Shown: piece by piece, positions 2,966-41,432 of the stretch
Layout: the number at the start of each line of letters is the position of its first letter
Position numbering within the stretch: position 1 is the stretch's first letter
Assembly (NCBI GenBank): GCA_002269645.1
Contig: NIVC01004577.1
Span: 1-41,432 of the forward strand
Reading direction: 5' to 3'
Source of the DNA: Macrostomum lignano
Taxonomy: Eukaryota
DNA: 41,432 nt
The notes under the pieces: model-generated
Seen by the model: only the letters and a program-made list of their open reading frames with translations
Databases searched by the model: none
Told to the model about the DNA's origin: nothing
Translations under genes and position numbers: made by a program

Positions 2966-4115
2966 ATGTCCTTATCGAGCATTGCCGTCATCGTGGCCAT
3001 CTGGAGCTCTCGAGCTGCCGGTGAGACCTTCGTCTTCGACAAGAGGCCGGACCTGTGCTTCGCGGAGGCGGCCCCGGCTGCTGGCGACCAGCGCAAAGTG
3101 CTCGGAGTTGTTGACTCTCGAGTGTGCGCGGTTGAGTGCGCGGTCAACACCAGCGTGTGTTCCGTGTACCAATACCTGCCTGGCAACAAATCCTGCGTCC
3201 TTGGCAACAGCTGCGACCTGCTGCTGAAGTGGCAGAGTACTGGCGGGCCGGCGTGCGACACGCAGACGCTTCGAGATCGGGCAGCGTGCGGGACCACGAG
3301 CGACACTGCAGCCACAACTGCAGCCTCGACTGGAGCAGTTGCTACTACAACTACAACACCCACTACAACACCCACTACAACACCAACTACAACTACAACT
3401 ACAACACCAACTACAACACCAACTACAACACCAACTACAACACCCACTACAACTACAACACCCACTACAACTACAACTACAACTACAACACCAACTACAA
3501 CACCAACTACAACTACAATGCCAACTACAACTACAACACCGACTACAACTACAACACCCACTACAACTACAACTACAACTACAACACCAACTACAACACC
3601 AACTACTACTACAATGCCAACTACAACTACAACACCGACTACAACTACAACACCAACTACAACTACAACACCAACTACAACACCAACTACAACTACAACA
3701 CCAACTACAACTACAACACCAACTACAACACCAACTACAACTATAACACCAACTACAACTATAACACCAACTACAACTACAGCTCCAGCTACAACACCAA
3801 CTACAACACCAACTACAACTATAACACCAACTACAACTACAGCTCCAGCTACAACACCAACTACAACACCAACTACAACTATAACACCAACTACAACTAC
3901 AGCACCAGCTACAACACCAACTACAACTACAACACCAACTACAACACCAACTACAACACCAACTACAACTACAACACCAACTACAACTACATCACCAACT
4001 ACAACTACAACACCAACACCAACTACAACACCAACTACAACACCAACTACAACTACAACACCAACTACAACTACAGCACCAGCTACAACACTCAGTGCGC
4101 CATCTGCATTCAATG
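2966..4115 (+). CDS. Exon 1 of a secreted protein: signal peptide, PAN/Apple-like Cys domain, Thr/Pro-rich mucin stalk
   Basis: MSLSSIAVIVAIWSSRAAG is signal-like. CAVECAVNTSVCSVYQYLPGNKSCVLG fits the PAN C-x3-C-x5/6-C-x2-[FY]-x-Y-x6-C-x-L pattern. About 250 aa of TTTTP/ATTP follow. Strong donor AATG|GTAAGT at 4115/4116 (phase 1). Confidence 0.8.
3345..4090 (+). repeat. Coding low-complexity repeat (ACTACA/ACACCA units) encoding the poly-Thr-Pro mucin stalk
   Basis: In frame between the PAN domain and the splice donor. Confidence 0.9.
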
Positions 4116-4719
4116 GTAAGTGCGCATGAGAATTAAAAAACCAAATGCCGGGTTCTGGATGCTATTATAGATAACAGTGTAACAGTTTATAGCGATATAT
4201 AAAGTCGAACCACTGTAGTATAACAAGACGTAGAACTCATCTTTTGGAGGCCAATTTACTAAAAGAACACTGCGAAAAAATTATTTCTTCATCACAAAAG
4301 CAATGCTGGCATTTGATCTGGGGCAGTAAAAATTACTTATTCGTATAATATCAAACATGCACAACATATGTTACTCTGTTGTATTTTATACAGTTGTGTA
4401 GTGAAAGTTTCATATTGTTTTCTTTTTATTTGAGAAGCCCAAGGTTGTAAACACTCATAAGTGGCACTATATCTGAAATTTTTGTTTTGCTCCTTCTCAA
4501 ATCAAATATATTTGTAATAAAATGTGGCAAGCAGGTACTCTAGGTACTCTAAGCCAATATTGTAGGTATAATGATCCATTTCAATGCATATTAGTTCCTA
4601 GATACATTACATACATGCATACACAGTTTGTGCATACAACTTTGGGCTTATTAAATGAAAAAAAGACAATATAAAAATGAAACTTTCTCTACACAGGTAT
4701 ATCATACAATAGAGTAACC

Positions 4720-5327
4720 AAGGACTACTAAAGTAACATATATATAGGACGCAACACTCGAAATCTATGGTAAATGTTTTAAAGGCAACTTTTCGCCGAA
4801 AAATACACTACAGAGATAGGAAATTTCACGATTTTCAACACTAAAACAGTGATTGGGTCTCTTAACAGTGTCAGAGAATGTTCTAATCACACAATTTTGT
4901 GCTTCACATGCTGCTCTAACGACGCATTAATCGATCCATTATTTTAAACGTTTTTTTCAAGTGACAGACCAATTAAACATGAAAAACAATTAATGCGTGG
5001 TTAGAGCAGCATGTGAGGCACAAAATTGTGTGATTAGAACTTTCTCTGACACTGTTAAGAGACCCAATCACTGTTTTAGTGTTGAAAATCGTGAAATTTC
5101 CTACCTCCGTAGTGTATTTTTCCGGTGAAACCTGCCTTTACATCTATTTCTGAACGAAAAGCTTTATGAATATCGATAGAGCAATAAGAAAGGCACAACA
5201 TATCAAAAGATGAACACTGGATCTGCCTATCTCTCCTATCTCTGTAGTGTATTTTTCGGCGAGAAGTTGCCTTCAAAACATTTACCATAGATTTCGAGTG
5301 TAGCGTCCTTCTACTTAAGTTGTCCTT
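4720..5327. mobile_element. Foldback/MITE-like element with long inverted arms, in the intron
   Basis: 4746-4931 (aggacgcaacactcgaaatctatggtaaatg...gctctaacgacgcattaat) is the near-perfect reverse complement of 4990-~5140 plus ~5232-5309. The outer aaggactactaaagta / tacttaagttgtcctt also pair. Confidence 0.75.
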
Positions 5328-6519
5328 GAGAGTAACATGCTGTGCATGCTAAATTAAAAGAATGGTAATCATCACTGCCCCAGAGCTGGCATCGATGCAA
5401 CGAAATTCAATTTATTATTTGATGAAAAAAATGTTTTCTTTCATCCATCTTCTAACCCGAGTAAATTAGCCGGTCTCTGACTGTTTTTACCATGGCTGCC
5501 TTCTGGCGGCATTTCTCGGGTTGTGGGCAATCCAATTGACCTACCCTTAAGGTAGCTCAATCCTAAAGTGTCCTCACGGGAGGTAGATGTGCATTCCAAA
5601 AATCTAAATATACTAAATCTCTAATATTTGTTTGTTTGTCCATAACGCTCTAGAGAGAGCAATTCTTGTAACAATTCTCTAAGTTTCTGCCCTGCCTTGG
5701 TTTAGGGGGGTTGTACCTGGAGTGATTGTGACTCTGGACTGCAGTGTGGCTGAGCCTCCGGGTCGTAGTACCCACCCTGCAGGAAAGACGATCATTCACA
5801 AAAGTGTACGGTAGAGCCCAGTTGATGCCAGCCCTGAGGCTGAGCCCCTAGTGATCCTCCTCCATTATTGATTTTATCCCTGTCTTTGTGCTTTGTGTTT
5901 TATCCCTTGCTTTTAGCTTTTGATCCATGGACAACTAGAGTAGTCTACTCTAGTTGTTCATGTTTTGGTCATGATCGAGCCAACCCAAAATTTAGGAGCT
6001 AAGATCTCGCCTCTGTGAATTCCATCGGCTCCCTCGGCCCATCTGCTGTCTCCTCTGGCTGTCTCCCTGCTTATTGTGTCTCGGCTATCATCACTGACAG
6101 TGGATTGGTGTCCTGGAGAATGAGTTCGTCCCGAATCGGAGAATACTGGCTGAGTGCCCTTTTGCTCTGTGCTGCTCCTCTCCAACCCCTTGGCTTGGGC
6201 TTATTAGAGCTGGGTACTGAAAAAGCCTTGTGGCTTGCAGCCCTATTGGAGGTTTTATCCTAAAGGCCTACCTGACAGGAGACTCGCTCCTGATAAATAA
6301 GCTGCCCACACTCTTTGCCCACAAGCTAGTAGCAGCTCAGCTAGGGCAAGTCCCCGGCCTCCAATACTGGCGTCTCGGGCTTATGCCCCTAGTAGTGTCG
6401 CCCTACAAAATCGCTGCGGCAGAGCCCTTCCCTGGACTGATCCGCGCTAGGCTAAGCTTGGCACTTCGTTTAACAACAACAACAAAATTAACCTTCAAAA
6501 TAATTACACGTTCTCAGAG

Positions 6520-7370
6520 TTTTACACCAGCTGTTGTACGACAATGGTCCTTGCAATAAAAACTCAAATTCCATCGAACTCCCTCCAGCTCCTCCGTCGG
6601 ACTCGAGCAACCAAACTGGATCGGTGCAGACTTTCACTCCGCCGACCGACGGCTGCTATCGAATCTCGGCTTGGGGCGCCAGAGGCGGCAAGTCATCCGC
6701 TAACGCGAACGGCGGCAGAGGCGCATTCAAGAGCGCCAATTTCATGCTGACCACGTCGCAAACTCTCACGCTTGTTGTTGGCAAGCCGGGAAACAGAGGC
6801 AGCAGCGGCGGAGGAGGCGGAGGAGGCGGCAGCTTTGTGTACACAACCGGCCCCAGCACGCTGCTACTGGTGGCCGGTGGCGGAGGAGGCGGCGGCGCCG
6901 CATCTTCTTCGACGATCGGTAAGGACGGAACAAGCAGCACCGGAGGCTCTTGCGACACATCCGACGGACAAGGCGGTGACGGTGAAAGCTTTAGAAACTC
7001 TGGCGCGGGCGGAGCTGGTTGGAGCTCAGATGGAACAGCCCTGGCCACTGACAAAAACGGAGGCCACGGTGGAAGAAGCATCAGCGGCAACTGGGCCGGA
7101 GGCAACGGAGGGCCGGGCAGCAACGGCTTCGGCGGCTACGGTGGAGGCGGCGGAGGCGGCAACAACAATGATGAAGATGGAGGCGGCGGCGGAGGAGGCG
7201 GCTACTCTGGCGGCTGCGGAGGACCCGGCGACAGCAGTAACGGCTACGGAGGCGGCGGTGGCAGCTACGCGAGCTCATCCGGCAAGCAGGCCACGGGAAC
7301 GACAGGCGGCAACGGTGAAGTCTTCGGCAAGGTGAGCATCGCTCAGGTGGACGGCTCTCTGTGCAGTTAA
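6520..7370 (+). CDS. Terminal exon encoding an ALK/LTK-type glycine-rich domain (GRD, Gly_rich-type); probably exon 2 of the PAN-mucin gene
   Basis: TGSVQTFTPPTDGCYRISAWGARGG...GGRGAFKSANFMLTTSQTLTLVVGKPG...GGGGGGGSFVY...LLLVAGGGGGG...GGYGGGGG...GGGGGGYSGG...GGGGSY matches ALK/LTK GRD motifs. There is no ATG at the 5' end and an in-frame stop at 6501, so it must be spliced. Acceptors at 6517/6519; TAA at 7368-7370. Confidence 0.8.
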
Positions 7371-7513: not shown

Positions 7514-7519
7514 AATAAA
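7514..7519 (+). promoter_or_regulatory. Candidate polyadenylation signal AATAAA
   Basis: About 145 nt downstream of the GRD stop codon, in an AT-rich 3' UTR-like region. Confidence 0.45.
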
Positions 7520-8051: not shown

Positions 8052-9567
8052 GGGATTGTTCAAGTTTGCAGATTGTGAAGTTTGAGAATTGGGAAGTTTG
8101 AGGATTGTGAAGCTTGAGGATTGTGAAGCTTGGGGATTGTGAAGCTTGGGGATTGTGAAGCTTGGGGATTGTGAAGCTGGGGGATTGTGAAGCTTGAGGA
8201 TTGGGAAGCTTGGGGATTGTGAAGCTTGAGAATTGTGAAGCTTGAGGATTGGGAAGCTTGAGAATTGTGAAGCTTGGGGATTGTGAAGCTTGAGAATTGT
8301 GAAGCTTGAGGATTGGGAAGCTTGGGGATTGTGAAGCTTGGGGATTGTGAAGCTTGGGGATTGTGAAGCTTGAGGATTGTGAAGCTTGAGGATTGTGAAG
8401 CTTGGGGATTGTGAAGCTTGAGAATTGTGAAGCTTGAGGATTGTGAAGCTTGAGAATTGTGAAGCTTGAGGATTGTGAAGCTTGAGAATTGTGAAGCTTG
8501 AGGATTGGGAAGCTTGGGGATTGTGAAGCTTGAGGATTGTGAAGCTTGGGGATTGTGAAGCTTGAGGATTGTGAAGCTTGAGGATTGTGAAGCTTGGGGA
8601 TTGTAAAGCTTGGGGATTGTGAAGCTTGGGGATTGTGAAGCTTGAGGATTGTGAAGCTTGAGGATTGTGAAGCTTGGGGATTGTGAAGCTTGAAGATTGT
8701 GAAGCTTGGGATTGTGAAGCTTGAGGATTGTGAAGCTTGAGGATTGTGAAGCTTGGGGATTGTGAAGCTTGGGGATTGTGAAGCTTGGGGATTGTGAAGC
8801 TTGGGGATTGTGAAGCTTGGGGATTGTGAAGCTTGGGGATTGTGAAGCTTGAGAATTGTGAAGCTTGAGGATTGGGAAGCTTGAGGATTGTGAAGCTTGG
8901 GGATTGTGAAGCTTGGGGATCGTGAAGCTTGAGGATTGTGAAGCTTGAGGATTGTGAAGCTTGGGGATTGTGAAGCTTGGGGATTGTGAAGCTTGAGGAT
9001 TGTGAAGCTTGAGGATTGGGAAGCTTGGAGATTGTGAAGCTTGGGGATTGCGAAGCTTGAGGATTGTGAAGCTTGAGGATTGTGAAGCTTGAGGATTGTG
9101 AAGCTTGAGGATTGTGAAGCTTGGGGATTGGGAAGTTTGAGGATTGTGAAGCTTGAGGATTGTGAAGCTTGAGGATTGTGAAGCTTGGGGATTGTGAAGC
9201 TTGAAGATTGTGAAGCTTGAGGATTGTGAAGCTTGAGGATTGTGAAGCTTGGGGATTGTGAAGTTCGGGGATTGTGAAGCTTGAGGGTTGTGAAGCTTGA
9301 GGATTGTGAAGCTTGGAGATTGTGAAGCTTGAGGATTGTGAAGCTTGGAGATTGTGAAGCTTGAGGATTGTGAAGCTTGAGGATTGTGAAACTTAGGGTT
9401 TGTGAAGCTTGAGGATTGGGAAGCTTGAGGATTGTGAAGCTTGAGAATTGAAAAGTTTGGGGATTGTGAAGCTTGAGGATTTTGAAACTTAGGGTTTGTG
9501 AAGCTTGAGGATTGGGAAGCTTGAGGATTGTGAAGCTTGAGAATTGAAAAGTTTGGGGATTGTGAAG
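8052..9567. repeat. 16-bp minisatellite (TTGTGAAGCTTG[A/G]GGA)n, block 1
   Basis: Roughly 90 copies, HindIII site in most units, degenerate edges. The long ORFs here are artefacts of a 48-nt/16-aa period. Confidence 0.95.
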
Positions 9568-10060: not shown

Positions 10061-10116
10061 CATTGTTGTTTTACACCCTATTTGAGGCGCCCTTGGCAGT
10101 TGCTCCAAGGATTCTT
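10061..10116 (+). repeat. 56-bp direct repeat, copy 1 (copy 2 at 10730-10785)
   Basis: cattgttgttttacaccctattt[g/a]aggcgcccttggcagttgctccaaggattctt; one mismatch between copies. Confidence 0.9.
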
Positions 10117-10722
10117 GAGGATTGTGAAGCTTGAGGATTGGGAAGCTTGAGGATTGTGAAGCTTGGGGATTGTGAAGCTTGGGGATTGTGAAGCCTGGGG
10201 ATTGTGAAGCTTGAGGATTGTGAAGCTTGAGGATTGTGAAGCTTGGGGATTGTGAAGCTTGGGGATTGTGAAGCTTGGGGATTGTGAAGCTTGGGGATTG
10301 TGAAGCTTGGGGATTGTGAAGCTTGGGGATTGTGAAGCTTGAGGATTGGGAAGCTTGAGGATTGTGAAGCTTGGGGATTGTGAAGCTTGGGGATTGTGAA
10401 GCTTGGGGATTGTGAAGCTTGGGGATTGTGAAGCTTGAGGATTGGGAAGCTTGAGGATTGTGAAGCTTGGGGATTGTGAAGCTTGGGGATTGTGAAGCTT
10501 GAGGATTGTGAAGCTTGAAGATTGTGAAGCTTGAGGATTGTGAAGCTTGAGGATTGGGAAGCTTGAGGATTGTGAAGCTTGAGGATTGTGAAGCTTGAAG
10601 ATTGTGAAGCTTGGGGATTGTGAAGCTTGAAGATTGTGAAGCTTGAGGATTGTGAAGCTTGAGGATTGTGAAGCTTGAGGATTGTGACGTTTTTGGATTG
10701 TGAAGCTTGGCGATTGTGAAGT
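10117..10722. repeat. 16-bp minisatellite, block 2
   Basis: Same unit as 8052-9567; bracketed by the 56-bp duplication. Confidence 0.95.
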
Positions 10723-14504: not shown

Positions 14505-15889
14505 ATCAAATCTGCCCCTTTCAAAGTACTTCTCCCGGAGCCGAACAACAACAACGACAACAACAGAGTACGCTGCCAGTTCGCAAAAGCAGCGTCAGAT
14601 GGCGCGCTTCGAAGCTTGGGCGCGAACAAAGGCCGCACCGCCGGCAGAGTCCGGGGCGCCGGCGTCAGCCAGCAGACAGTCGACGTAGCGCCGAGTCCTC
14701 GCCTGTCCCCGCCGGTAGGGTGCCTGCAACGTAAGTAGCAGCACCTCCTGCACCGGCTCCGGACAGTAGGCCTCGGCGCGGATGACGTGGCCTGCCAGCT
14801 GGAGTCGCCGACGGCGCAGCAGATCGCTAGGACGGGCCAGGCCGGCGCGATAGAGAGCGCCGTGTTGGTGACTCGCTCGTTGCCGATCTTGAAGGCGGCG
14901 CGCAGCAGGCCAGCGTGCGCCGCGTCGACTTGAGCTCGAGCGAGTCTATCAGCGTCCAGGTCTCGGCGTTGTATAACAGGACGGTCTCGATCACCGCCTG
15001 GAACAGCGCCGCCCTCTGGCGGTCCGGTAGGGCCTCGGACTGCAGGACTGACCTTATAGACCTCCGTCCTGCAGGACGGAGCCGAACGCACTCGTCCATT
15101 CTTCTGCGCCAGGCCTCCATGCAGCCCTCGAAGGCTTGGGAATACCTACTAGCAGTTTCGTCGTCGTGGCCCTTCTGAAGGTATCAACATCAGGAAATTG
15201 AGTTTGAAACCTCCTTGAGCTTGGGAAATAGGAAAAAATCGCACGGAACTAGATTGGAAGAATATCGAAGCTGGTCTAGCACTGTGACATTCCTATTCGC
15301 GAGATACTCCCTGACACTTGGAGCATTGTGAGCTGGCTCATTGTCCTGATGAAGGAACCACGAGGTTGCTTCCCACAAATCGTGTCTCTTGTCTCGCACT
15401 GAGGGAAGCAGTTGCTGCAGGATCCCTTTGTACACATGCTGATTGATGGTTTGACCTTGGCGTAGAAACTCCATGTGAAAAACGCCTCTGACATCTGACA
15501 TTGAAGGTCTTCCACTCCTGGTGTCGTCCTCGACCTCCTCCCGCCCTCCTTAAATCGTTTGTGCCACTCAAAACTCGGGAGCGAGATACTCGTAGCATTA
15601 ACTCCATACACTTTCCGCAACAGTGCAAGTGCTTCCGAGGGCGGTTTATTGAATCGGACCAAAAACTTTAGATTGGTTCGTTGCTTGGTGCTCATTGGCA
15701 CGACGATTGTTAAAAAACTTACTGAACGTTACTAATAGCACATATTGGCACAAAACTGATGATCAGCTGAAATTGCAGGACAGAGCTCCTGTTATATGCT
15801 GCTACAGCCTGCAATATGTCGCAAATTGATAGTGCATACAGAAGCTGTGCTGTAGGCACAGTCCTGGAACTTTTCTGACGCACCTCGTA
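14505..15889 (-). mobile_element. Internally deleted, frameshifted mariner (Tc1/mariner) transposon with one TIR; interrupted by a LINE
   Basis: TIR TACGAGGTGCGTCAGAAAAGTTCCAGGAC ends at TA 15888-9. Transposase pieces: KQRTNLKFLVRFNKPPSEALALLRKVYG..FEWHKRFKEG; VFHMEFLRQGQTIN..WFLHQDNEPAH..YSSNLVPCDFFLFPKLKE; AFEGCMEAWRRRMDECVRL|REKYFE. Second TIR not found. Confidence 0.85.
14547..15076 (-). mobile_element. 5'-truncated RTE-clade LINE with (GTT)n tail and 11-bp TSD, inserted in the mariner transposase
   Basis: VLQSEALPDRQRAALFQAVIETVLLYNAETWTL..VDAAHAGLLRAAFKIGNERVTN..LRRRRLQLAGHVIRAEAYCPEPVQEVLLLTLQAPYRRGQARTRRYVDCLLADAGAPD; stop at 14595-7. TSD cggagccgaac at 14536-14546 and 15077-15087. 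Confidence 0.9.
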
Positions 15890-21807: not shown

Positions 21808-21819
21808 TTGAGATTCTAG

Positions 21820-22630
21820 ACGTGGAAAATGAGTCCCATCAGTTTTGAGACGTGGAAAATGAGTCAATAAGTTTTGAGTGGAAAATGAGTCCCAACTACA
21901 ATAGTTTTGAGATGTGGAAATGAGTCCCATCAGTTTTGAGATGTGGAAATGAGTTCCATTAGTTTTGAGATGTGGAAATGAGTCCCATCAGTTTTGAGAT
22001 GTGGAAATGAGTCCCATCAGTTTTGAGATGTGGAAATGAGTCATGTCAGTTTTGAGATGTGGAAATGAGTCCCATCAGTTTTGAGATGTGGAAATGAGTC
22101 CCATCAGTTTTGAGATGTGGAAATGAGTCCCATCAGTTTTGAGATGTGGAAATGAGTCCCATCAGTTTTGAGATGTGGAAATGAGTCCCATCAGTTTTGA
22201 GATGTGGAAATGAGTCCCATTAGTTTTGAGATGTGGAAATGAGTTCCATCAGTTTTGAGGTGTGGAAATGAGTCCCATCAGTTTTGAGATGTGGAAATGA
22301 GTCCCATTAGTTTTGAGATGTGGAAATGAGTCCCATCAGTTTTGAGATGTGGAAATGAGTCCCATCAGTTTTGAGATGTGGAAATGAGTCCCATTAGTTT
22401 TGAGATGTGGAAATGAGTCCCATCAGTTTTGAGATGTGGAAATGAGTTCCATCAGTTTTGAGGTGTGGAAATGAGTCCCATCAGTTTTGAGATGTGGAAA
22501 TGAGTCCCATCAGTTTTGAGATGTGGAAATGAGTCCCATCAGTTTTGAGATGTGCGAAATGAGTCCCATCAGTTTTGAGATGTGCAAAATGAGTCCCAAC
22601 TACAATTGTTTTAAGATGTGGAAAATGAGT
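21820..22630. repeat. 29-bp minisatellite (GATGTGGAAATGAGTCCCATCAGTTTTGA)n
   Basis: About 27 head-to-tail copies, no spacers. Confidence 0.95.
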
Positions 22631-23202: not shown

Positions 23203-26200
23203 GTAGATCTGTTGCTAACTGATAGAAGCGATGCGTGATTAGATCCATGAGTAGATCTGTTGCTAACTGATAGAAGCGTGATTAGATCCACGAGTAGATC
23301 TGTTGCTAACTGATAGAAGCGTGATTAGATCCACGAGTAGATCTGTTGCTAACTGATAGAAGCGATGCGTGATTAGATCCACGAGTAGATCTGTTGCTAA
23401 CTGATAGTTGCGTGATTAGATCCACGAGTAGATCTGTTGCTAACTGATAGAAGCGTGATGAGATCCACGAGTAGATCTGTTGCTAACTGATAGAAGCGTG
23501 ATTAGATCCACGAGTAGATCTGTTGCTAACTGATAGAAGCGTGATTAGATCCACGAGTAGATCTGTTGCTAACTGATAGAAGCGATGCGTGATTAGATCC
23601 ACGAGTAGATCTGTTGCTAACTGATAGTTGCGTGATTAGATCCACGAGTAGATCTGTTGCTAACTGATAGAAGCGTGATGAGATCCACGAGTAGATCTGT
23701 TGCTAACTGATAGAAGCGTGATTAGATCCACGAGTAGATCTGTTGCTAACTGATAGAAGCGTGATTAGATCCACGAGTAGATCTGTTGCTAATTGATAGA
23801 TGCGTGATTAGATCCACGAGTAGATCTGTTGCTAATTGATAGATGCGTGATTAGATCCACGAGTAGATCTGTTGCTAATTGATAGAAGCGTGATTAGATT
23901 CACGAGTAGATCTGTTGCTAACTGATAGAAGCGATGCGTGATTAGATCCATGAGTAGATCTGTTGCTAACTGATAGAAGCGTGATTAGATCCACGAGTAG
24001 ATCTGTTGCTAACTGATAGAAGCGTGATTAGATCCACGAGTAGATCTGTTGCTAACTGATAGAAGCGATGCGTGATTAGATCCACGAGTAGATCTGTTGC
24101 TAACTGATAGTTGCGTGATTAGATCCACGAGTAGATCTGTTGCTAACTGATAGAAGCGTGATTAGATCCACGAGTAGATCTGTTGCTAACTGATAGAAGC
24201 GTGATTAGATCCACGAGTAGATCTGTTGCTAACTGATAGAAGCGTGATTAGATCCACGAGTAGATCTGTTGCTAACTGATAGAAGCGATGCGTGATTAGA
24301 TCCACGAGTAGATCTGTTGCTAACTGATAGTTGCGTGATTAGATCCACGAGTAGATCTGTTGCTAACTGATAGAAGCGTGATGAGATCCACGAGTAGATC
24401 TGTTGCTAACTGATAGAAGCGTGATTAGATCCACGAGTAGATCTGTTGCTAACTGATAGAAGCGTGATTAGATCCACGAGTAGATCTGTTGCTAATTGAT
24501 AGATGCGTGATTAGATCCACGAGTAGATCTGTTGCTAATTGATAGATGCGTGATTAGATCCACGAGTAGATCTGTTGCTAATTGATAGAAGCGTGATTAG
24601 ATCACGAGTAGATCTGTTGCTAACTGATAGAAGCGATGCGTGATTAGATCCACGGGTAGATCTGTTGCTAACTGATAGAAGCGTGATTAGATCCACGAGT
24701 AGATCTGTTGCTAATTGATAGAAGCGTGATTAGATCCACGAGTAGATCTGTTGCTAACTGATAGATGCGTGATTAGATCCACGAGTAGATCTGTTGCTAA
24801 TTGATAGAAGCGTGATTAGATCCACGAGTAGATCTGTTGCTAACTGATAGATGCGTGATTAGATCCACGAGTAGATCTGTTGCTAACTGATAGAAGCGTG
24901 ATTAGATCCACGAGTAGATCTGTTGCTAACTGATAGAAGCGATGCGTGATTAGATCCACGAGTAGATCTGTTGCTAACTGATAGATGCGTGATTAGATCC
25001 ACGAGTAGATCTGTTGCTAACTGATAGAAGCGATGCGTGATTAGATCCACGAGTAGATCTGTTGCTAACTGATAGAAGCGTGATTAGATCCACGAGTAGA
25101 TCTGTTGCTAACTGATAGATGCGTGATTAGATCCACGAGTAGATCTGTTGCTAACTGATAGAAGCGTGATCAGATCCACGAGTAGATCTGTTGCTAACTG
25201 ATAGAAGCGATGCGTGATTAGATCCACGAGTAGATCTGTTGCTAACTGATAGATGCGTGATTAGATCCACGAGTAGATCTGTTGCTAACTGATAGAAGCG
25301 ATGCGTGATTAGATCCACGAGTAGATCTGTTGCTAATTGATAGAAGCGTGATTAGATCCACGAGTAGATCTGTTGCTAACTGATAGAAGCGATGCGTGAT
25401 TAGATCCACGGGTAGATCTGTTGCTAACTGATAGAAGCGTGATTAGATCCACGAGTAGATCTGTTGCTAATTGATAGAAGCGTGATTAGATCCACGAGTA
25501 GATCTGTTGCTAACTGATAGAAGCGATGCGTGATTAGATCCACGGTAGATCTGTTGCTAACTGATAGAAGCGTGATTAGATCCACGAGTAGATCTGTTGC
25601 TAATTGATAGATGCGTGATTAGATCCACGAGTAGATCTGTTGCTAATTGATAGAAGCGTGATTAGATCCACGAGTAGATCTGTTGCTAATTGATAGAAGC
25701 GTGATTAGATCCACGAGTAGATCTGTTGCTAACTGATAGAAGCGTGATTAGATCCATGAGTAGATCTGTTGCTAATTGATAGAAGCGTGATTAGATCCAC
25801 GAGTAGATCTGTTGCTAACTGATAGAAGCGTGATTAGATCCACGAGTAGATCTGTTGCTAACTGATAGAAGCGTGATTAGATCCACGAGTAGATCTGTTG
25901 CTAACTGATAGAAGCGATGCGTGATTAGATCCACGAGTAGATCTGTTGCTAACTGATAGTTGCGTGATTAGATCCACGAGTAGATCTGTTGCTAACTGAT
26001 AGAAGCGATGCGTGATTAGATCCACGGGTAGATCTGTTGCTAACTGATAGAAGCGTGATTAGATCCACGAGTAGATCTGTTGCTAATTGATAGATGCGTG
26101 ATTAGATCCACGAGTAGATCTGTTGCTAATTGATAGAAGCGTGATTAGATCCATGAGTAGATCTGTTGCTAATTGATAGAAGCGTGATTAGATCCACGAG

Positions 26201-26347
26201 TAGATCTGTTGCTAACTGATAGAAGCGTGATTAGATCCACGAGTAGATCTGTTGCTAACTGATAGAAGCGTGATTAGATCCACGAGTAGATCTGTTGCTA
26301 ACTGATAGAAGCGTGATTAGATCCACGAGTAGATCTGTTGCTAACTG
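23203..26347. repeat. 43-bp satellite (GTAGATCTGTTGCTAACTGATAGAAGCGTGATTAGATCCACGA)n with 42- and 48-bp variants
   Basis: About 70 tandem copies; resumes at 28094-28183 beyond the gypsy element. Confidence 0.95.
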
Positions 26348-27903
26348 CCGCGCCATGCCAGGCCACCAGAATTTCCCCCGCAGCCGGTCGATGGCCTTCC
26401 TCCTGCCAAATTGACCCTGGTGGGCCCAACTGACGGTCTGCTGCTGAAGCGCTGCGGGTACAACGATTTTGTTGCCCCTGAGCAGCACGCCGTCACGCAC
26501 CTGAAGCTCCCCCTTGAGCGAGTGGAAGCTGCCGGCCTGGTCTGTAGCGCCGGAGCGCCAGTTGCCAACGCCTGCATGACGAAGGTCAGAGCCGGGTCCC
26601 CAGCTGTGGCATCGCGGACGCTCTTGATGGTCGGGCCTTCCGGTGCAGACTTGACAGAGTTGAGCTGCTGCAGCAGTACGTTGTCCTGGACTGGTTGCGC
26701 GTTTAGAGAATCGCTCAGACTTGTTGTCTCTCTGGCCGGTGCGCGGTCCTGCGTCCCCAGACTCAGCAGCTGCAGAGATGTCGAGGTTGCACGGCCGAGC
26801 ACGCTGGTGCCGGTCCCTGGGACGATGATGAAGCTGGCGCGCCGGACCATTGAGCCAACCGAAACCTGCAGGCTGCAGGCTCCCACAGTGCGCAGAGGTT
26901 TAGCTGATTGAAATGAAAAAATCTTCTTTGTCGTCGGCTGCAGGCCTGGGGGTCCCGGGAGCTCTCGCCAGGCTGCCTCGGTGAGGATGTTACAGTCGGC
27001 TCCGCTGTCCACCAGCACCTGCACTGGAGTCGCTTCTACCAGCACCGTGGCAAGAGCCGCTGTTGCGTTCGTGTCGGAGGCCATCACGGTCAGGCAGAAG
27101 ACGTCGTCCTCTTCGCCCGAACTGTCGCTGCCGACCCGCAGAGCTCGCACGTCCTCCGGCCGGGACAGACAGGCCTTGGCGAGGTGATTCGGCTTGCCGC
27201 ATCGGTTGCAGGTCTTGCCTACCGCTGCGCTGCAGCTGCGGTGGCCGAAGTTGCCGCAGCGGATGCACTTTGGCTGCGTGCGATCGACTGTCTGAGTGGC
27301 TGATCTCTGCGGCTGCCCTGGCGGGCTGGACTCGCGCTTCCGCAACCGCTGCACGGTCACTGCGCTGGTCTCCATGAGGCTGGCCTGCGCCTCCGCTGCC
27401 TCCATGGCCCTGGCCACCCGGACCGCCTGGCCCAGGTCCACGTTGTCCATGGCCAGCAGCTTCCTGCGGAGCTTCTCGGAGCTGCAGCCGGCGATCAGCT
27501 GGTCGCGGATCAGCGAGTCCCGGAGGCCTTCGAATTTGCAACAGTCCGCGGTGTTGTTGAGCCGCCGCAGCCAGTCGTCCAGGGACTCTCCGGTCTGCTG
27601 GGTGCACAGCCGGAACTGGTAGCGGGTGAAGGGCAGGTTGAGCTGGCTGGTGAAGTGCTCATTGAGAGCCTTGATTAGCTTGTCGACGTCATCATCGGTG
27701 TCGGCGAGTCCGGCTGCAACGGCTTGCAGGTCCTCGCCCGCTATGTATAGGAGTTGGCGAAGTCGCTTCTTGTCAGAGATGTCAGCAGCCGCGGCGAACA
27801 GCTGGAACTGAGCCAGCCACTTGCTCCACTTCGTATGTGCCGCATGGGGCTCCTCGCGCAAGTTCAATGTGGCCGGTATGGGTAGGCTTGCTTGCGACGC
27901 CAT
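26348..27903 (-). CDS. gag-protease-(deleted RT/RH)-integrase N-terminus ORF of the gypsy element; frameshift near 26540
   Basis: Open from MASQASLPIPATLNL through WSKWLAQFQLFAAAAD (gag) and the DSG protease. The integrase zinc-binding region is in a shifted frame. Confidence 0.75.
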
Positions 27904-28093
27904 TGTAGTGCGCTTGTGTGCTGAGAAAATCATGGTCTCATGGACCGTATATTTGAGCTACTATATAGTATCACTGCCGACGTGCGGCTACAATGTTACG
28001 CAATAGTTGAGGGACAAGTCAGTGCACGTTGGTCGAGAGGGCTATAGTTAGTCATCACAGAAGAGTAAAGGCATAGACTGGGCGTACACTACA
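26348..28093 (-). mobile_element. Truncated Ty3/gypsy (Mag/K02A2.6-like) LTR retrotransposon: 5' LTR, PBS, gag, protease, integrase N-terminus; RT/RNaseH absent
   Basis: 190-bp LTR 27904-28093 (TGTAGTG...CACTACA), followed directly by PBS-like TGGCGTCGCAAGC overlapping the gag ATG. Two Zn knuckles (CIRCGNFGHRSC; CNRCGKPNHLAKAC), protease LVDSGADCNIL, integrase-adjacent ELQVRDGVLLRGNKIVVP..WAHQGQFG..FWWPGM. Confidence 0.9.
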
Positions 28094-28710: not shown

Positions 28711-29225
28711 CTTACAGAGGTCATGTGGGGTCAGGATTCTCAGACACAGGTCATGTGGGGTCAGGATTCTTAGACACAGGTCATGTGGGGTCAGGATTCT
28801 CAGACACAGGTCATGTGGGGTCAGGATTCTCAGACACAGGTCATGTGGGGTCAGGATTCTCAGACACAGGTCATGTGGGGTCAGGATTCTCAGACACAGG
28901 TCATGTGGGGTCAGGATTCTCAGACACAGGTCATGTGGGGTCAGGATTCTTAGACACAGGTCATGTGGGGTCAGGATTCTCAGACACAGGTCATGTGGGG
29001 TCAGGATTCTCAGACACAGGTCATGTGGGGTCAGGATTCTCAGACACAGGTCATGTGGGGTCAGGATTCTCAGACACAGGTCATGTGGGGTCAGGATTCT
29101 TAGACACAGGTCATGTGGGGTCAGGATTCTCAGACACAGGTCATGTGGGGTCAGGATTCTCAGACACAGGTCATGTGGGGTCAGGATTCTCAGACACAGG
29201 TCATGCGGGGTCAGGATTCTTAGAC
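28711..29225. repeat. 30-bp minisatellite (ACAGGTCATGTGGGGTCAGGATTCTCAGAC)n in the presumed 3' UTR of the RRM-Tudor gene
   Basis: About 17 near-identical copies starting 25 nt past the stop codon at 29251. Confidence 0.95.
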
Positions 29226-31230: not shown

Positions 31231-31348
31231 AATCTTTAAATCTCCTTCCAATTTCATATTCTCAAAAAATCCCAACCCTTAAAAAATCGTTATATTAATT
31301 TCATTCCCACAAGCAGCCTCAGTTACCATAGCAACTATAAATTCTCAC

Positions 31349-31742
31349 TTGCAAGGCCCGGCACGGTGGCACGGCCAGACTAGCTGGCAGCGACCTCAAT
31401 TCCGCTGCCTCTACCCGCCTTTCGACGCCAATGTCGACTAGAAATGCCCGAAACAGATTGACGCTGAGCGACTCAATGAGTTGAACTCGGCAAGCCAAAC
31501 CATCGATGCATGCTATCAGGCCGCCGCTAGTACCAACGTTGTCCCTGGCAACCGATGCAGATATTTTCGATGCCGGATTAGACGCCCACGAGTCCAGTTC
31601 GGTCTGAAAATCCGGCTCGCCCGGGTTACTAGGCGGGAGTGCGCTAACCCAGAATTTGGCTGCACTGCGAAACTGCTTAGCGTCCAAATAAATACTTAGC
31701 ATGGCCGTTTGGTCCAGCCTCAGCCAGTCTAACCGCCTGCGC
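31349..31742 (-). CDS. RRM-Tudor protein exon 3 (Tudor domain 1)
   Basis: Acceptor aatttcag|G (phase 2), donor CAA|GTGAGA (phase 0). AAKFWV..GGLIACIDG..CRVQLIE..RAFLVDIGVERRVEAAELRSLPASLAVPPCRAL is a Tudor pattern. Confidence 0.82.
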
Positions 31743-31802: not shown

Positions 31803-32634
31803 ACACCCGCTGCTATGATCTTCGCTCCCTCCTCACACCCGCTGCTTCTATGACCTTCGCTCCCTTCTCACACCTGCTCCTTCTATGACCTTCGCTCCCT
31901 CTATGACCTTCGCTCCCTCCTCACACCCGCTGCTTCTTTGACCTTCGCTCCCTCCTCACACCCGCTGCTTCTTTGACCTTCGCTCCCTCCTCACACCCGC
32001 AGCTTCTTTGACCTTCGCTCCCTTCTCACACCCGCTCCTTCTATGACCTTCGCTCACTTCTCACACCCGCTGCTTCTATGACCTTCGCTGACTTCTCACA
32101 CCCACTCCTTCTATGACCTTCGCTCACTTCTCACACCCGCTCCTTCTATAACCTTCGCTCACTTCTCACACCCGCTCCTTCTATGATCTTCGCTCACTTC
32201 TCACACCCGCTCCTTCTATGACCTTCGCTGACTTCTCACACCCGCTCCTTCTATGACCTTCGCTGACTTCTCACACCCGCTCCTTCTATGACCTTCGCTC
32301 ACTTCTCACACCCGCTCCTTCTATGATCTTCGCTCCCTCCTCACACCCGCTGCTTCTTTGACCTTCGCTCCCTTCTCACACCCGCTCCTTCTATGACCTT
32401 CGCTCACTTCTCACACCCGCTGCTTCTATGACCTTCGCTCACTTCTCACACCCGCTGCTTCTATGACCTTCGCTCACTTCTCACACCCGCTCCTTCTATG
32501 ACCTTCGCTGACTTCTCACACCCGCTCCTTCTATGACCTTCGCTCCCTTCTCACACCCGCTCCTTCTATGACCTTCGCTGACTTCTCACACCCGCTCCTT
32601 CTATGACCTTCGCTCCCTTCTCACACCCGCTCCT
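31803..32634. repeat. 35-bp intronic minisatellite (CTTCTATGACCTTCGCTCACTTCTCACACCCGCTC)n
   Basis: About 23 copies filling the intron between exons 2 and 3. Confidence 0.95.
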
Positions 32635-32655
32635 ATACTCCCGCTGCCAGCTTAC

Positions 32656-33068
32656 ACAGCAGCGGGCGGCGAACTGCAGGGAACATTGTTATGCAACGGT
32701 TGTGGCGGCGGTGGCACAGCGGCGGCGGCACCAGCGGTAGGTGCCGGCAGAGACGACAACAGTGGCAAAATTGGCAAACTGTCGTTGGAAGCAATCGACG
32801 ATCTAGCTGGTTGGCTAAGACTATCATTCGAACTACGGTTTGCCGTGTTATTATTGCGCTGATTATAACTATTTCGATTAGTCTTGTGCCGTACAGTTAG
32901 TTTAACATTGGGCTCGACAGCATAGCCATTGAACTGATTGACAGCCTGCTCTGCTCCAGACCAATCGCGCATGTTCACAAAGCCTTGCAGAGTGCCATTG
33001 TCGAAGTGCTGTTTAATGAAAACTGATTCCACAGGTCCGCAGGTCTCAAACATGCTCCATATTCTCCC
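32656..33068 (-). CDS. RRM-Tudor protein exon 2 (RRM body with RNP1, N/S/P-rich linker)
   Basis: Acceptor ctatag|GGG (phase 0). IWSMFETCGPVESVFIK..LQGFVNMRDWSGAEQAVNQFNGYAVEPNVKLTVR. Donor GT|GTAAGC (phase 2). Confidence 0.85.
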
Positions 33069-37114: not shown

Positions 37115-38245
37115 AGAAAAACTTCCAGCTCGAAATCTATTCGCATTTCTGGCCAGCTGCTCAGCAGTTGAGGATTTACTCCTAAAAATCATCGCGCAGA
37201 GAGTCGGCAATCAAAGCACCTTCAGCTATTTCTGCTGCTGGCTCGAATCGGCATCGCTTCGCCTCGTTTTTACTTCCCAATGCATCTCTCTTAATTCCAG
37301 CTGCTTTGTCAGCATGACAGATCTGTGTGGCCGCTCACATGGAAAACACCATCAGCAGTCTGCCTCACTGAGCCATTGCACTTCAAGTCTTCATTGCGGA
37401 CGATGCACTTCCAATAATTGCAGCCAGCTTTGCCTCCGTTCCGCCCTAGAAGATATCCAAACGAGGATACAAGGAGATCACCACCGCGTTTACTAATACC
37501 GCGTTTCAGCTCAAAATGTTCTTGCTGCGACTCAAGCTGCACTTCAACGAGTGGCGTCGGATCCTGTAGTCCATCGTAATTTCGATCCGCGGCAGCACCG
37601 GCGTGGACAGCTGCAGGTGGATCGGCGGCAGCACCGGCGGGAAAGCTGCAGGTTGGATCGGCGGCAGCACCGGCGTGGACAGCTGCAGGTTGGATCGGCG
37701 GCAGCACCGGCGTGGACAGCTGCAGGTGGATCGGCGGCAGCACCGGCGTGGACAGCTGCAGGTGGATCGGCGGCAGCACACCGGCGTGGACAGCTGCAGG
37801 TGGATCGGCGGCAGCACCGGCGTGGACAGCTGCAGGTGGATCGGCGGCAGCACCGGCGTGGACAGCTGCAGGTGGATCGGCGGCAGCACCGGCGTGGACA
37901 GCTGCAGGTGGGATCGGCGGCAGCACCGGCGTGGACAGCTGCAGGTGGCATCGGCGGCAGCACCGGCGTGGACAGCTGCAGGTTGGATCGGCGGCAGCAC
38001 CGGCGTGGAAAGCTGCAGGTTGGATCGGCGGCAGCACCGGCGTGGACAGCTGCAGGTGGATCGGCGGCAGCACCGGCGTGGACAGCTGCAGGTGGATCGG
38101 CGGCAGCACCGGCGTGGACAGCTGCAGGTTGGATCGGCGGCAGCACCGGCGTGGACAGCTGCAAGTGGATCGCGGCAGCACCGGCGTGGACAGCTGCAGG
38201 TGGATCGGCGGCAGCACCGGCGTGCATGGGCTGCTGGTAGATTGG
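37115..38245 (-). pseudogene. Degenerate Mutator-like (MULE) transposase fragment with FLYWCH zinc finger; DDE domain absent
   Basis: FELKRGISKRGGDLLVSSFGYLLG..NYWKCIVRNEDLKCNGSVRQ..HVSGH (FLYWCH). Then, across frameshifts and stops, CHADKAAG..RFEPAAEIAE..TAEQLARNANRFRA, similar to the LARxANRxR motif of invertebrate MULEs. Confidence 0.7.
37588..38225. repeat. 36/37-bp GC-rich minisatellite (GCAGCACCGGCGTGGACAGCTGCAGGTGGATCGGCG)n
   Basis: About 17 copies; the minus strand can read PPAAVHAGAAAD, directly upstream of the FLYWCH domain. Confidence 0.95.
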
Positions 38246-40789: not shown

Positions 40790-41432
40790 CAGCTAGTGCA
40801 ATAATCCTTGGTTTATTAATAGCAATAATCCTTGATTAATCAAGTGCAATAATCCTTGGTTTATCAAGTGCAATAATCCTTGGTTTATCAAGTGCAGTAA
40901 TCTTTGGCTTATCAAGTGCAATAATCCTTGGTTTATCAAGTGCAATAATCCTTTGTTTATCAAGTGCAATAATCCTTGGTTTATCAAGTGCAATAATCCT
41001 TGGTTTATCAAGTGCAATAATCCTTGGTTTATCAAGCGCAGTAATCTTTGGCCTATCAAGTGCAATAATCCTTGGTTTATCAAGTGCAATAATCCTTGGT
41101 TTATCAAGTGCAATAATCCTTGGTTTATCTAGCGCAGTAATCCTTGCTTATCAAGTGCAATAATCATTGGTTTATCAAGTGCAATATTTGTTTATCAAGT
41201 GCAATAATCCTTGGTTTATCAAGTGAAATAATCCTTGTTTATCAAGTGCAATAGTCCTTGGCTTATCAACTGCAATAATCCTTGTTTATCAAGTGCAATA
41301 ATCCTTGGTTTATCAAGCACAGTAATCCTTGGCCTATCAAGTGCAATATTTGTTTATCAAGTGCAATAATCCTTGGCTTATCAACTGCAATAATCCTTGG
41401 TTTATCAAGTGCAATAATCCTTGTTTATCAAG
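40790..41432. repeat. 24-bp minisatellite (TATCAAGTGCAATAATCCTTGGTT)n running off the window end
   Basis: More than 25 copies. Confidence 0.95.

Follow-up and report, generated by a model that had tools for sequence, protein, structure and literature searches.

The glycine-rich domain (GRD) of the receptor kinases ALK and LTK, both of which are cancer drug targets, has to our knowledge been given a function only as the cytokine-binding part of these receptors. A stretch of the Macrostomum lignano genome (assembly GCA_002269645.1, contig NIVC01004577.1; 41,432 bases, referred to here as the window) raises the question of what else such a domain may be used for, as positions 2966-7370 carry coding sequence for a signal peptide, a PAN/Apple-like head and a threonine-rich stalk, followed after an interruption by a GRD. 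All coordinates given are those of the whole window and refer to the plus strand unless stated otherwise. Our analysis indicates that this locus is probably a two-exon flatworm gene for a secreted bridging or adhesive PAN-mucin-GRD glycoprotein. A preliminary description of the locus had listed a signal peptide, a Cys domain, a Thr-rich stalk, a splice donor, an ATG-less second exon, a stop codon and an AATAAA signal, and each of these was recovered, the stalk measuring 273 amino acids (aa). The secreted PAN/Apple-mucin-GRD architecture that it had drawn from them was also borne out by a PAN_1 match, the stalk, the GRD fold and the signal peptide.

The GRD was located at 6606-7367, in a frame that starts at 6519 and is open from 6504, right after a TAA. 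This exon lacks a signal peptide of its own and any ATG upstream of the domain. It begins with a linker (6520-6605, VLHQLLYDNGPCNKNSNSIELPPAPPSDS) that contains one extra Cys and was modelled with a low predicted local distance difference test score (pLDDT), and of which 6520-6588 would be intronic if the acceptor at 6587-88 is used. The frame is ended by a TAA stop codon at 7368-7370, and an AATAAA polyadenylation signal follows at 7514-7519, 144 nt past the stop. The Pfam model PF12810 (ALK_LTK_GRD) scored only 12.6 bits (E 0.14), below its gathering threshold of 24.5, with paralogues reaching 19-34 bits and many GRD relatives carrying a precomputed PF12810 match. The GRD call is therefore based on pairwise, family and fold evidence. 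A phmmer search against PDB sequences returned LTK first (7nx0, E 7.4e-10, 42 bits), followed by seven ALK ectodomain entries, so that the domain for which the preliminary description had proposed a HMMER check was found by pairwise comparison but fell below the cut-off of the Pfam model. A HMMER search of a clustered representative protein library yielded 3355 GRD relatives at E<=0.001.

An AlphaFold2 model of the GRD, built with 87 relatives, had a mean pLDDT of 88.2 and a predicted template modelling (TM) score, pTM, of 0.88. Beta-strands form either end of the model, and its long Gly-rich middle is neither helix nor strand, consistent with a complete TNF-like beta-sandwich and polyglycine-II region closed by a conserved terminal Cys. 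When the model was compared with the PDB using Foldseek, the top 21 matches were all LTK or ALK GRDs (E 1.6e-13 to 2.6e-7, probability 1.0) and nothing else was significant, as the preliminary description had anticipated of a GRD fold. The vertebrate receptors were matched with TM-scores of 0.62-0.67 at 24-30% identity; the invertebrate ALK GRD 7lir gave the worst match of the ALK set, with a TM-score of 0.45. The open reading frame (ORF) of the domain is intact and keeps all family-invariant Gly, Tyr and Cys residues as well as the terminal-strand positions. On sequence comparison and modelling together, we consider the GRD to be real and complete. Foldseek matches 22-25 were glycine-rich phage tail proteins, among them the Bxb1 tail tip (9d93, E 9e-3, weak) and the fibre of cyanophage Pam3.

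Proteins built in the same way are numerous in M. lignano. At least 25 database clusters of this species combine a signal peptide, a PAN-like head and a GRD, and they fall into two subfamilies. Members include P0139 (403 aa, PAA61162.1, "Apple domain-containing protein"), P0153 (373 aa, PAA57358.1) and P0160 (504 aa, A0A1I8IMG2), along with the fragments P0162 (A0A1I8J935), P0166 (A0A1I8GWL7), P0191 and P0270. For both domains, the only relatives of this architecture among animals were these M. lignano proteins (31-59% identity); tblastn against P0139 gave 36% identity for the PAN segment and 46% for the GRD. When a profile of the PAN-to-GRD junction was used as query, about 20 additional UniRef clusters of M. 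lignano came up and otherwise nothing above the bacterial background; among the 271 GRD relatives retrieved, a local hidden Markov model (HMM) of the PAN head matched Macrostomum proteins only. Repeats common to the window and 28 kb of M. lignano DNA were looked for and not found, and the locus would represent an unannotated paralogue. The window protein carries the features that run through the family, namely the signal peptide, the head with eight Cys, an invariant GCY/F motif, and a G[KR]V.I strand followed by a Cys and the stop codon. By these matches it is assigned to a lineage-specific, multi-copy family otherwise seen only in M. lignano.

The family itself is already present in UniProt and NCBI under automatic names and is uncharacterised. 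Some members have been auto-named "receptor protein-tyrosine kinase". The auto-names "Jacalin", "PPC" and "Fascin" were considered as pointers to different heads, and this was rejected, the entries being near-identical fragments of one subfamily. Our search for literature on Macrostomum Apple/GRD proteins, including the genes Mlig019850 and Mlig028980, found no relevant paper. The architecture, which the preliminary description did not recognise, is not a named family, but neither is it unique, given its many M. lignano paralogues in these databases.

Exon 1 spans 2966-4115, within an unspliced ORF that runs from the ATG at 2966 to 4129. This ATG is the first downstream of an in-frame stop and opens a predicted signal peptide (2966-3022, MSLSSIAVIVAIWSSRAAG) of about 18-19 residues, which reads MSLSSIAVIVAIWSSRAA followed by GE and leads into the 8-Cys region. 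It is the sole hydrophobic 19-residue segment of the protein (Kyte-Doolittle 1.44), and its N-terminus, MSLS.IA, is common to the window protein and P0139. A donor-like CCG/GTGAGA (8.7 bits) lies at 3021-3026, exactly at the predicted cleavage site and in phase 1, like the acceptors of the GRD exon; splicing from it to 6520 or 6589 would give a small, coral-like protein of signal peptide and GRD, although its position may be due to chance.

The PAN/Apple-like domain, with its eight Cys, occupies 3023-3295 (residues about 20-110). Pfam PAN_1 (PF00024) matched at 22.0 bits against a gathering threshold of 21.4 (E 1.5e-4), so the HMMER check that the preliminary description had proposed gave a match, by a narrow margin. 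A profile of four paralogues searched against the PDB placed plasminogen PAN (E 0.018), the apple domains of MIC4 (0.069) and other PAN proteins at the top. By tblastn, the segment aligned to P0139 and P0160 at 31-36% identity (E 4e-10 to 2e-16), and paralogues are named "Apple domain-containing" in UniProt. The AlphaFold model of the head had a pLDDT of 55, rising to about 70-78 in the core residues 41-88; with this low-confidence model Foldseek gave no match at E < 1, the PAN-containing 6ryw and plasminogen 4dur appearing weakly.

The remainder of exon 1 (3296-4115, residues 111-383) encodes a mucin-type stalk of 273 aa, made up of 71% Thr and 17% Pro in tandem repeats; the underlying arrays were placed at 3344-4091 by Tandem Repeats Finder (TRF), with periods of 18, 48 and 60 nt. 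Stalk and signal peptide together correspond to the definition of a mucin-type Pro/Thr/Ser (PTS) protein, that is, a long Thr/Ser/Pro tandem-repeat region in a secreted protein, and the stalk is predicted to be heavily O-glycosylatable. The first 14 residues and the Asp/Tyr/Asn-rich linker of P0166 align to another plus-strand frame of exon 1 (3190-3945), in which the Thr-repeat DNA reads NYNTNYN. Assembly indels that frameshifted old M. lignano gene models are one possible origin of this mismatch; another is a low-complexity linker that switched frame in evolution, from Thr-rich to Asp/Tyr-rich.

Whether the two exons belong together was examined by comparison with the family. A single PAN-coding and a single GRD-coding segment are present in the window; they share a strand and are correctly ordered, and further PAN or GRD paralogues, looked for inside the window, were not found. 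In P0139, P0153, P0160 and more than 20 further M. lignano UniRef clusters, a PAN-like head and a GRD are carried in one chain. P0166 aligns in a single high-scoring segment pair (HSP) that begins at the PAN end, spans the linker and reaches into the GRD (42% identity, E 7e-15). In the M. lignano genome (GCA_002269645.1), the P0139 gene has one intron, which is in phase 1 and lies in the linker between PAN and GRD. The context of its donor, GAG AAT G/GTGAGA, and that of the window, TTC AAT G/GTAAGT, are identical over AAT G/GT; P0153 likewise has a last intron in phase 1, about 18 residues before its GCYRL motif. For the fragments P0162 and P0166, look-ups returned no encoding contig from which exons could be read. 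Because the M. lignano relatives join PAN and GRD, and a phase-1 intron interrupts their genes in the corresponding region, we read the two exons as one gene, and the comparative sequence case for this architecture is strong.

The intron of this gene would run from 4116 to 6519 (2404 nt, phase 1) if exon 2 begins at 6520. Its donor, ATG/GTAAGT, scored 10.5 bits with a generic metazoan position weight matrix (PWM) and leaves one codon base in exon 1. The intron 3' end reads ...GTTCTCAGAG/TT and forms a tandem AGAG acceptor at 6516-6519, in which the CAG at 6516-17 is out of frame and the GAG at 6518-19 is in frame. The join at 6520 that had been proposed in the preliminary description is therefore in frame, but relies on a poor GAG acceptor next to a better, off-frame CAG. 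A second in-frame acceptor, CTCCCTCCAG (CCAG), is found at 6587-88 behind a better tract; an exon starting at 6589 would leave 23 residues to the invariant GCYRI, a spacing close to those of P0139 (21), P0153 (18) and P0160 (23). The 23 codons that this option drops are open in frame and are covered by the tblastn alignments of the closest relatives, the HSP of P0162 starting at 6537 (YDLNDCN aligned to YDNGPCN) and that of P0153 at 6531, with the shared Cys covered. As the sole acceptor, 6587-88 was rejected: its spacing fits, but the P0162 and P0153 HSPs extend upstream over the shared Cys. The alternative "NYN" frame of exon 1, considered because it would suit the CAG acceptor, was rejected as well, as it turns the junction codon into TGA. 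We regard a start of exon 2 at 6520 as an evenly balanced call and a start at 6589 as a serious though less probable second candidate; something else seems unlikely, be it a micro-exon, an assembly error of one base in the T-run (6520-6523) or non-productive splicing. Under all productive splice options, the PAN-mucin part and the GRD stay in one secreted protein. Nested inverted repeats were observed inside the intron (4746-5309), with inner arms of 152 nt at 93% identity (4780-4931 and 4989-5140) and outer arms of 76 nt at 96% identity (4746-4821 and 5234-5309), resembling a miniature inverted-repeat transposable element (MITE) or foldback element.

Several observations weigh against a two-exon gene for a bridging glycoprotein. 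An in-frame TGA lies four codons past the donor (4127-4129), with a poly(A)-like ATTAAA at 4132, and a PAN-mucin-only secreted product is therefore possible through intron retention or early polyadenylation. The canonical CAG at 6516-17, the strongest acceptor (exon from 6518), is off-frame with the phase-1 donor and would append a junk tail that stops after 78 codons, whereas the AG at 6518-19 has an unfavourable G at -3 and is a weak acceptor. No exact match to the joined protein, the exon-1 ORF or the two versions of the exon-2 ORF was found in a collection of 15 billion proteins, and a word-indexed search with the PAN head, the junction and the GRD N-terminus returned no match at E<=0.01. 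Support for the PAN head is marginal, with Pfam 0.6 bits over the cut-off, the paralogues below it and the fold search uninformative, and the function is proposed from domain content only. The early stop and ATTAAA, the off-frame CAG, the absence of an identical protein from that collection and a 2.4-kb intron full of inverted-repeat elements would all suit an alternative in which the exons do not form one functional mRNA, but a stand-alone PAN-mucin gene beside a GRD exon that is part of another transcript or a decaying relic, or a pseudogene whose splice is frameshifted at the CAG acceptor. We consider this improbable. The GRD ORF is intact, retains the family-invariant positions and folds confidently; the GRD exon has neither ATG nor signal peptide, and exon 1 is the sole PAN exon in the window; every M. 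lignano family member joins PAN and GRD; and two in-frame acceptors are available. The reading of the locus as a single two-exon gene was retained.

A donor-like GTGAGC (AAG/GTGAGC) is present at 7332-7337, in the last beta-strand codons, and with a PWM score of 10.8 it scores as high as the donor at 4116. Splicing from this site to downstream transmembrane or kinase exons was the outcome that, according to the preliminary description, would have overturned its reading; it is contradicted by a conserved and complete C-terminus. Reading through the site gives G-K-V-S-I-A-Q-V...C-S-stop, the stop codon falling 12 codons on, and the M. lignano relatives P0139, P0153 and P0160 end alike, the relatives' ends reading GRVKIEVIGTVNHTACTG, GRVDIRLLGPASTCA and GRVKIELLGTASSDLCA. 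The terminal G[KR]V.I strand (model residues 271-277) has a pLDDT > 90 and lies within the confidently modelled sandwich. As the C-terminal strand and the Cys before the stop are conserved in relatives, the donor at 7332 was judged not to be used. Pfam gave no match to an EGF-like domain in the protein, and no hydrophobic 19-residue segment that could cross a membrane was found outside the signal peptide (maximum 1.08). Kinase motifs (HRDxxxxN, DFG, GxGxxG and APE-type) were absent from all six frames of the window in what was a motif-level test only. The preliminary description had called the protein one without transmembrane segment or kinase, and this was upheld; the product is predicted to be soluble and secreted, and not a receptor.

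We propose that this product, of about 640-670 aa, would consist of the signal peptide, the 8-Cys PAN head, a stalk of about 270 aa, a Cys-containing linker and the complete GRD. Its domain content suggests that the PAN head and the GRD may each bind a partner, such as a glycan, a protein or a microbial surface, and that a rigid, hydrated stalk could hold the two heads apart, so that the molecule would act as an extracellular bridging or adhesive part of mucus, gland secretion or matrix. Of the 13 Cys in the protein, eight are in the PAN head and five in exon 2; the odd thirteenth might stay free and allow disulfide-linked multimers to form. From these features, our best guess is a secreted binding protein of mucus or matrix.

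The GRD being the ligand-binding module of ALK and LTK (PDB 7nx0, 7n00) and its fold being conserved here, the preliminary description had put forward a decoy: a soluble modulator of ALK signalling whose free GRD would sequester an invertebrate ligand of the Jeb/HEN-1 type. This is the least likely role and in our view a very remote one, because homologues of the ALKAL/Augmentor ligands are confined to vertebrates, and the invertebrate ligands Jeb and HEN-1 are LDLa proteins unrelated to them (PMC10605310). The invertebrate ALK GRD 7lir was moreover the poorest ALK match, and dozens of paralogues are hard to square with a dedicated decoy. Similarity to LTK and ALK, at 24-30% identity, is also low in comparison with the bacterial and coral stand-alone GRDs: bacterial and metagenomic GRDs scored 75-95 bits against the window GRD, its own paralogues 77-108 and LTK 42. 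The best-scoring GRD relatives, P0121-P0131, are giants of 1,600-3,100 aa with five to seven tandem GRDs at 41-45% identity per repeat, and the named relatives point to bacteria: P0125 is a giant of the TIGR02145 family, P0133 is shorter with a T9SS sorting domain, and P0135 is from Archangium gephyra.

This closeness to bacterial cell-surface GRDs, which equals that to the protein's own paralogues, raises a further possibility for the same gene, namely that it encodes a secreted pattern-recognition protein or agglutinin of mucosal immunity, in which the GRD or the PAN head binds microbes, the stalk anchors the molecule in mucus and the paralogues reflect an arms race. The large and divergent M. 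lignano family (at least 25 clusters in two subfamilies) is in keeping with such a role, as are the PEP-CTERM, T9SS, PKD and fn3 surface modules borne by the bacterial relatives. Polyglycine-II domains also serve as the receptor-binding tips of phage fibres (PMC13243192), and the weak Foldseek match to the Bxb1 tail tip would agree with this. Family expansion would, however, be equally predicted for reproductive or adhesive secretions, and we think an immune role unlikely, the bridging or adhesive function being preferred.

The same similarity carries a hint about the origin of the domain. Because the Macrostomum GRDs resemble one another no more closely than they resemble bacterial surface GRDs, it is conceivable, if not something we would favour, that the ALK-type GRD did not arise as a receptor-specific domain but is primarily a free secreted binding module with an ancestral or horizontally exchanged role in binding surfaces, glycans or microbes, and that ALK recruited it later. 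On this view, Macrostomum would have multiplied the module into dozens of soluble proteins with a PAN head, a part of them bearing mucin stalks. M. lignano is served by RNA interference, in situ hybridisation and transgenesis. A soluble GRD family in this animal would be a tractable system for studying both the role of the fold outside receptor signalling and the origin of the ALK ectodomain. Should the protein prove to serve in mucus, adhesion or immunity, invertebrate secreted materials would gain a new building block in the form of a mucin stalk bearing a polyglycine-II bundle.

Long tandem-repeat arrays are unusually abundant in the window; eight were listed, with units of 16, 29, 43, 30, 35, 36 and 24 nt at 87-98% identity (8071-9567, 10114-10721, 21818-22598, 23203-26347, 28714-29225, 31893-32634, 37584-38224 and 40795-41432). 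These arrays create long spurious ORFs on both strands. A 530-aa ORF on the minus strand (26341-27933) showed matches to PNMA/gag-like proteins, a CCHC zinc-knuckle and retroviral aspartyl protease, by which it is assigned as the gag-protease part of a long terminal repeat (LTR) retrotransposon. Also on the minus strand are a Mos1-type helix-turn-helix remnant (15276-15701) and two ORF fragments (31319-31702 and 32652-33053) with Tudor-domain (28 bits) and RRM (22 bits) matches; the fragments probably belong, as exons, to an adjacent Tudor/RRM gene.

Comparison with known systems places the window protein as follows. With ALK and LTK (7nx1, 7n00, 7lrz) it shares the fold of the whole GRD (Foldseek E 1.6e-13, TM-score 0.62-0.67) but not the EGF-like, transmembrane, kinase, MAM and LDLa elements, and three of the four features that define this receptor family are missing from it. 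Its matches place it instead in the broad PF12810 "glycine rich protein" superfamily, which has coral, fungal and many bacterial members. Secreted proteins with a stand-alone GRD occur commonly among bacteria and corals and in some fungi, and are likewise uncharacterised; those from Acropora, bacteria and fungi resemble the window protein (34-50% identity) in carrying a GRD after a signal peptide or surface anchor and in being kinase-free, but have neither PAN head nor mucin stalk. The bacterial proteins are often multi-GRD giants or bear PEP-CTERM, T9SS, PKD or fn3 modules, and the fungal PF12810 members have been described as giving "no hint of a function" in the single paper found to mention PF12810 (PMC4859500). 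The N-terminal PAN of plasminogen and the apple domain of apicomplexan MIC4 have the Cys-knotted core C-x3-C...C...C in common with the head, though the PAN match is weak. Secreted mucins have a PTS-type stalk in common with the protein, whereas the VWD, CK and SEA modules of gel-forming and membrane mucins are all absent from it. Closest are the annotated M. lignano members, with 43-54% identity in the GRD and 31-36% in the PAN head, which share the signal peptide, the 8-Cys PAN-like head, the complete GRD, the phase-1 linker intron and a conserved Cys one to three residues ahead of the stop. Where the annotated full-length members (373-504 aa) have a linker of 20-40 aa, the window copy has the 273-aa Thr/Pro stalk and an extra Cys, and it is this mucin stalk between the two heads that is new here.

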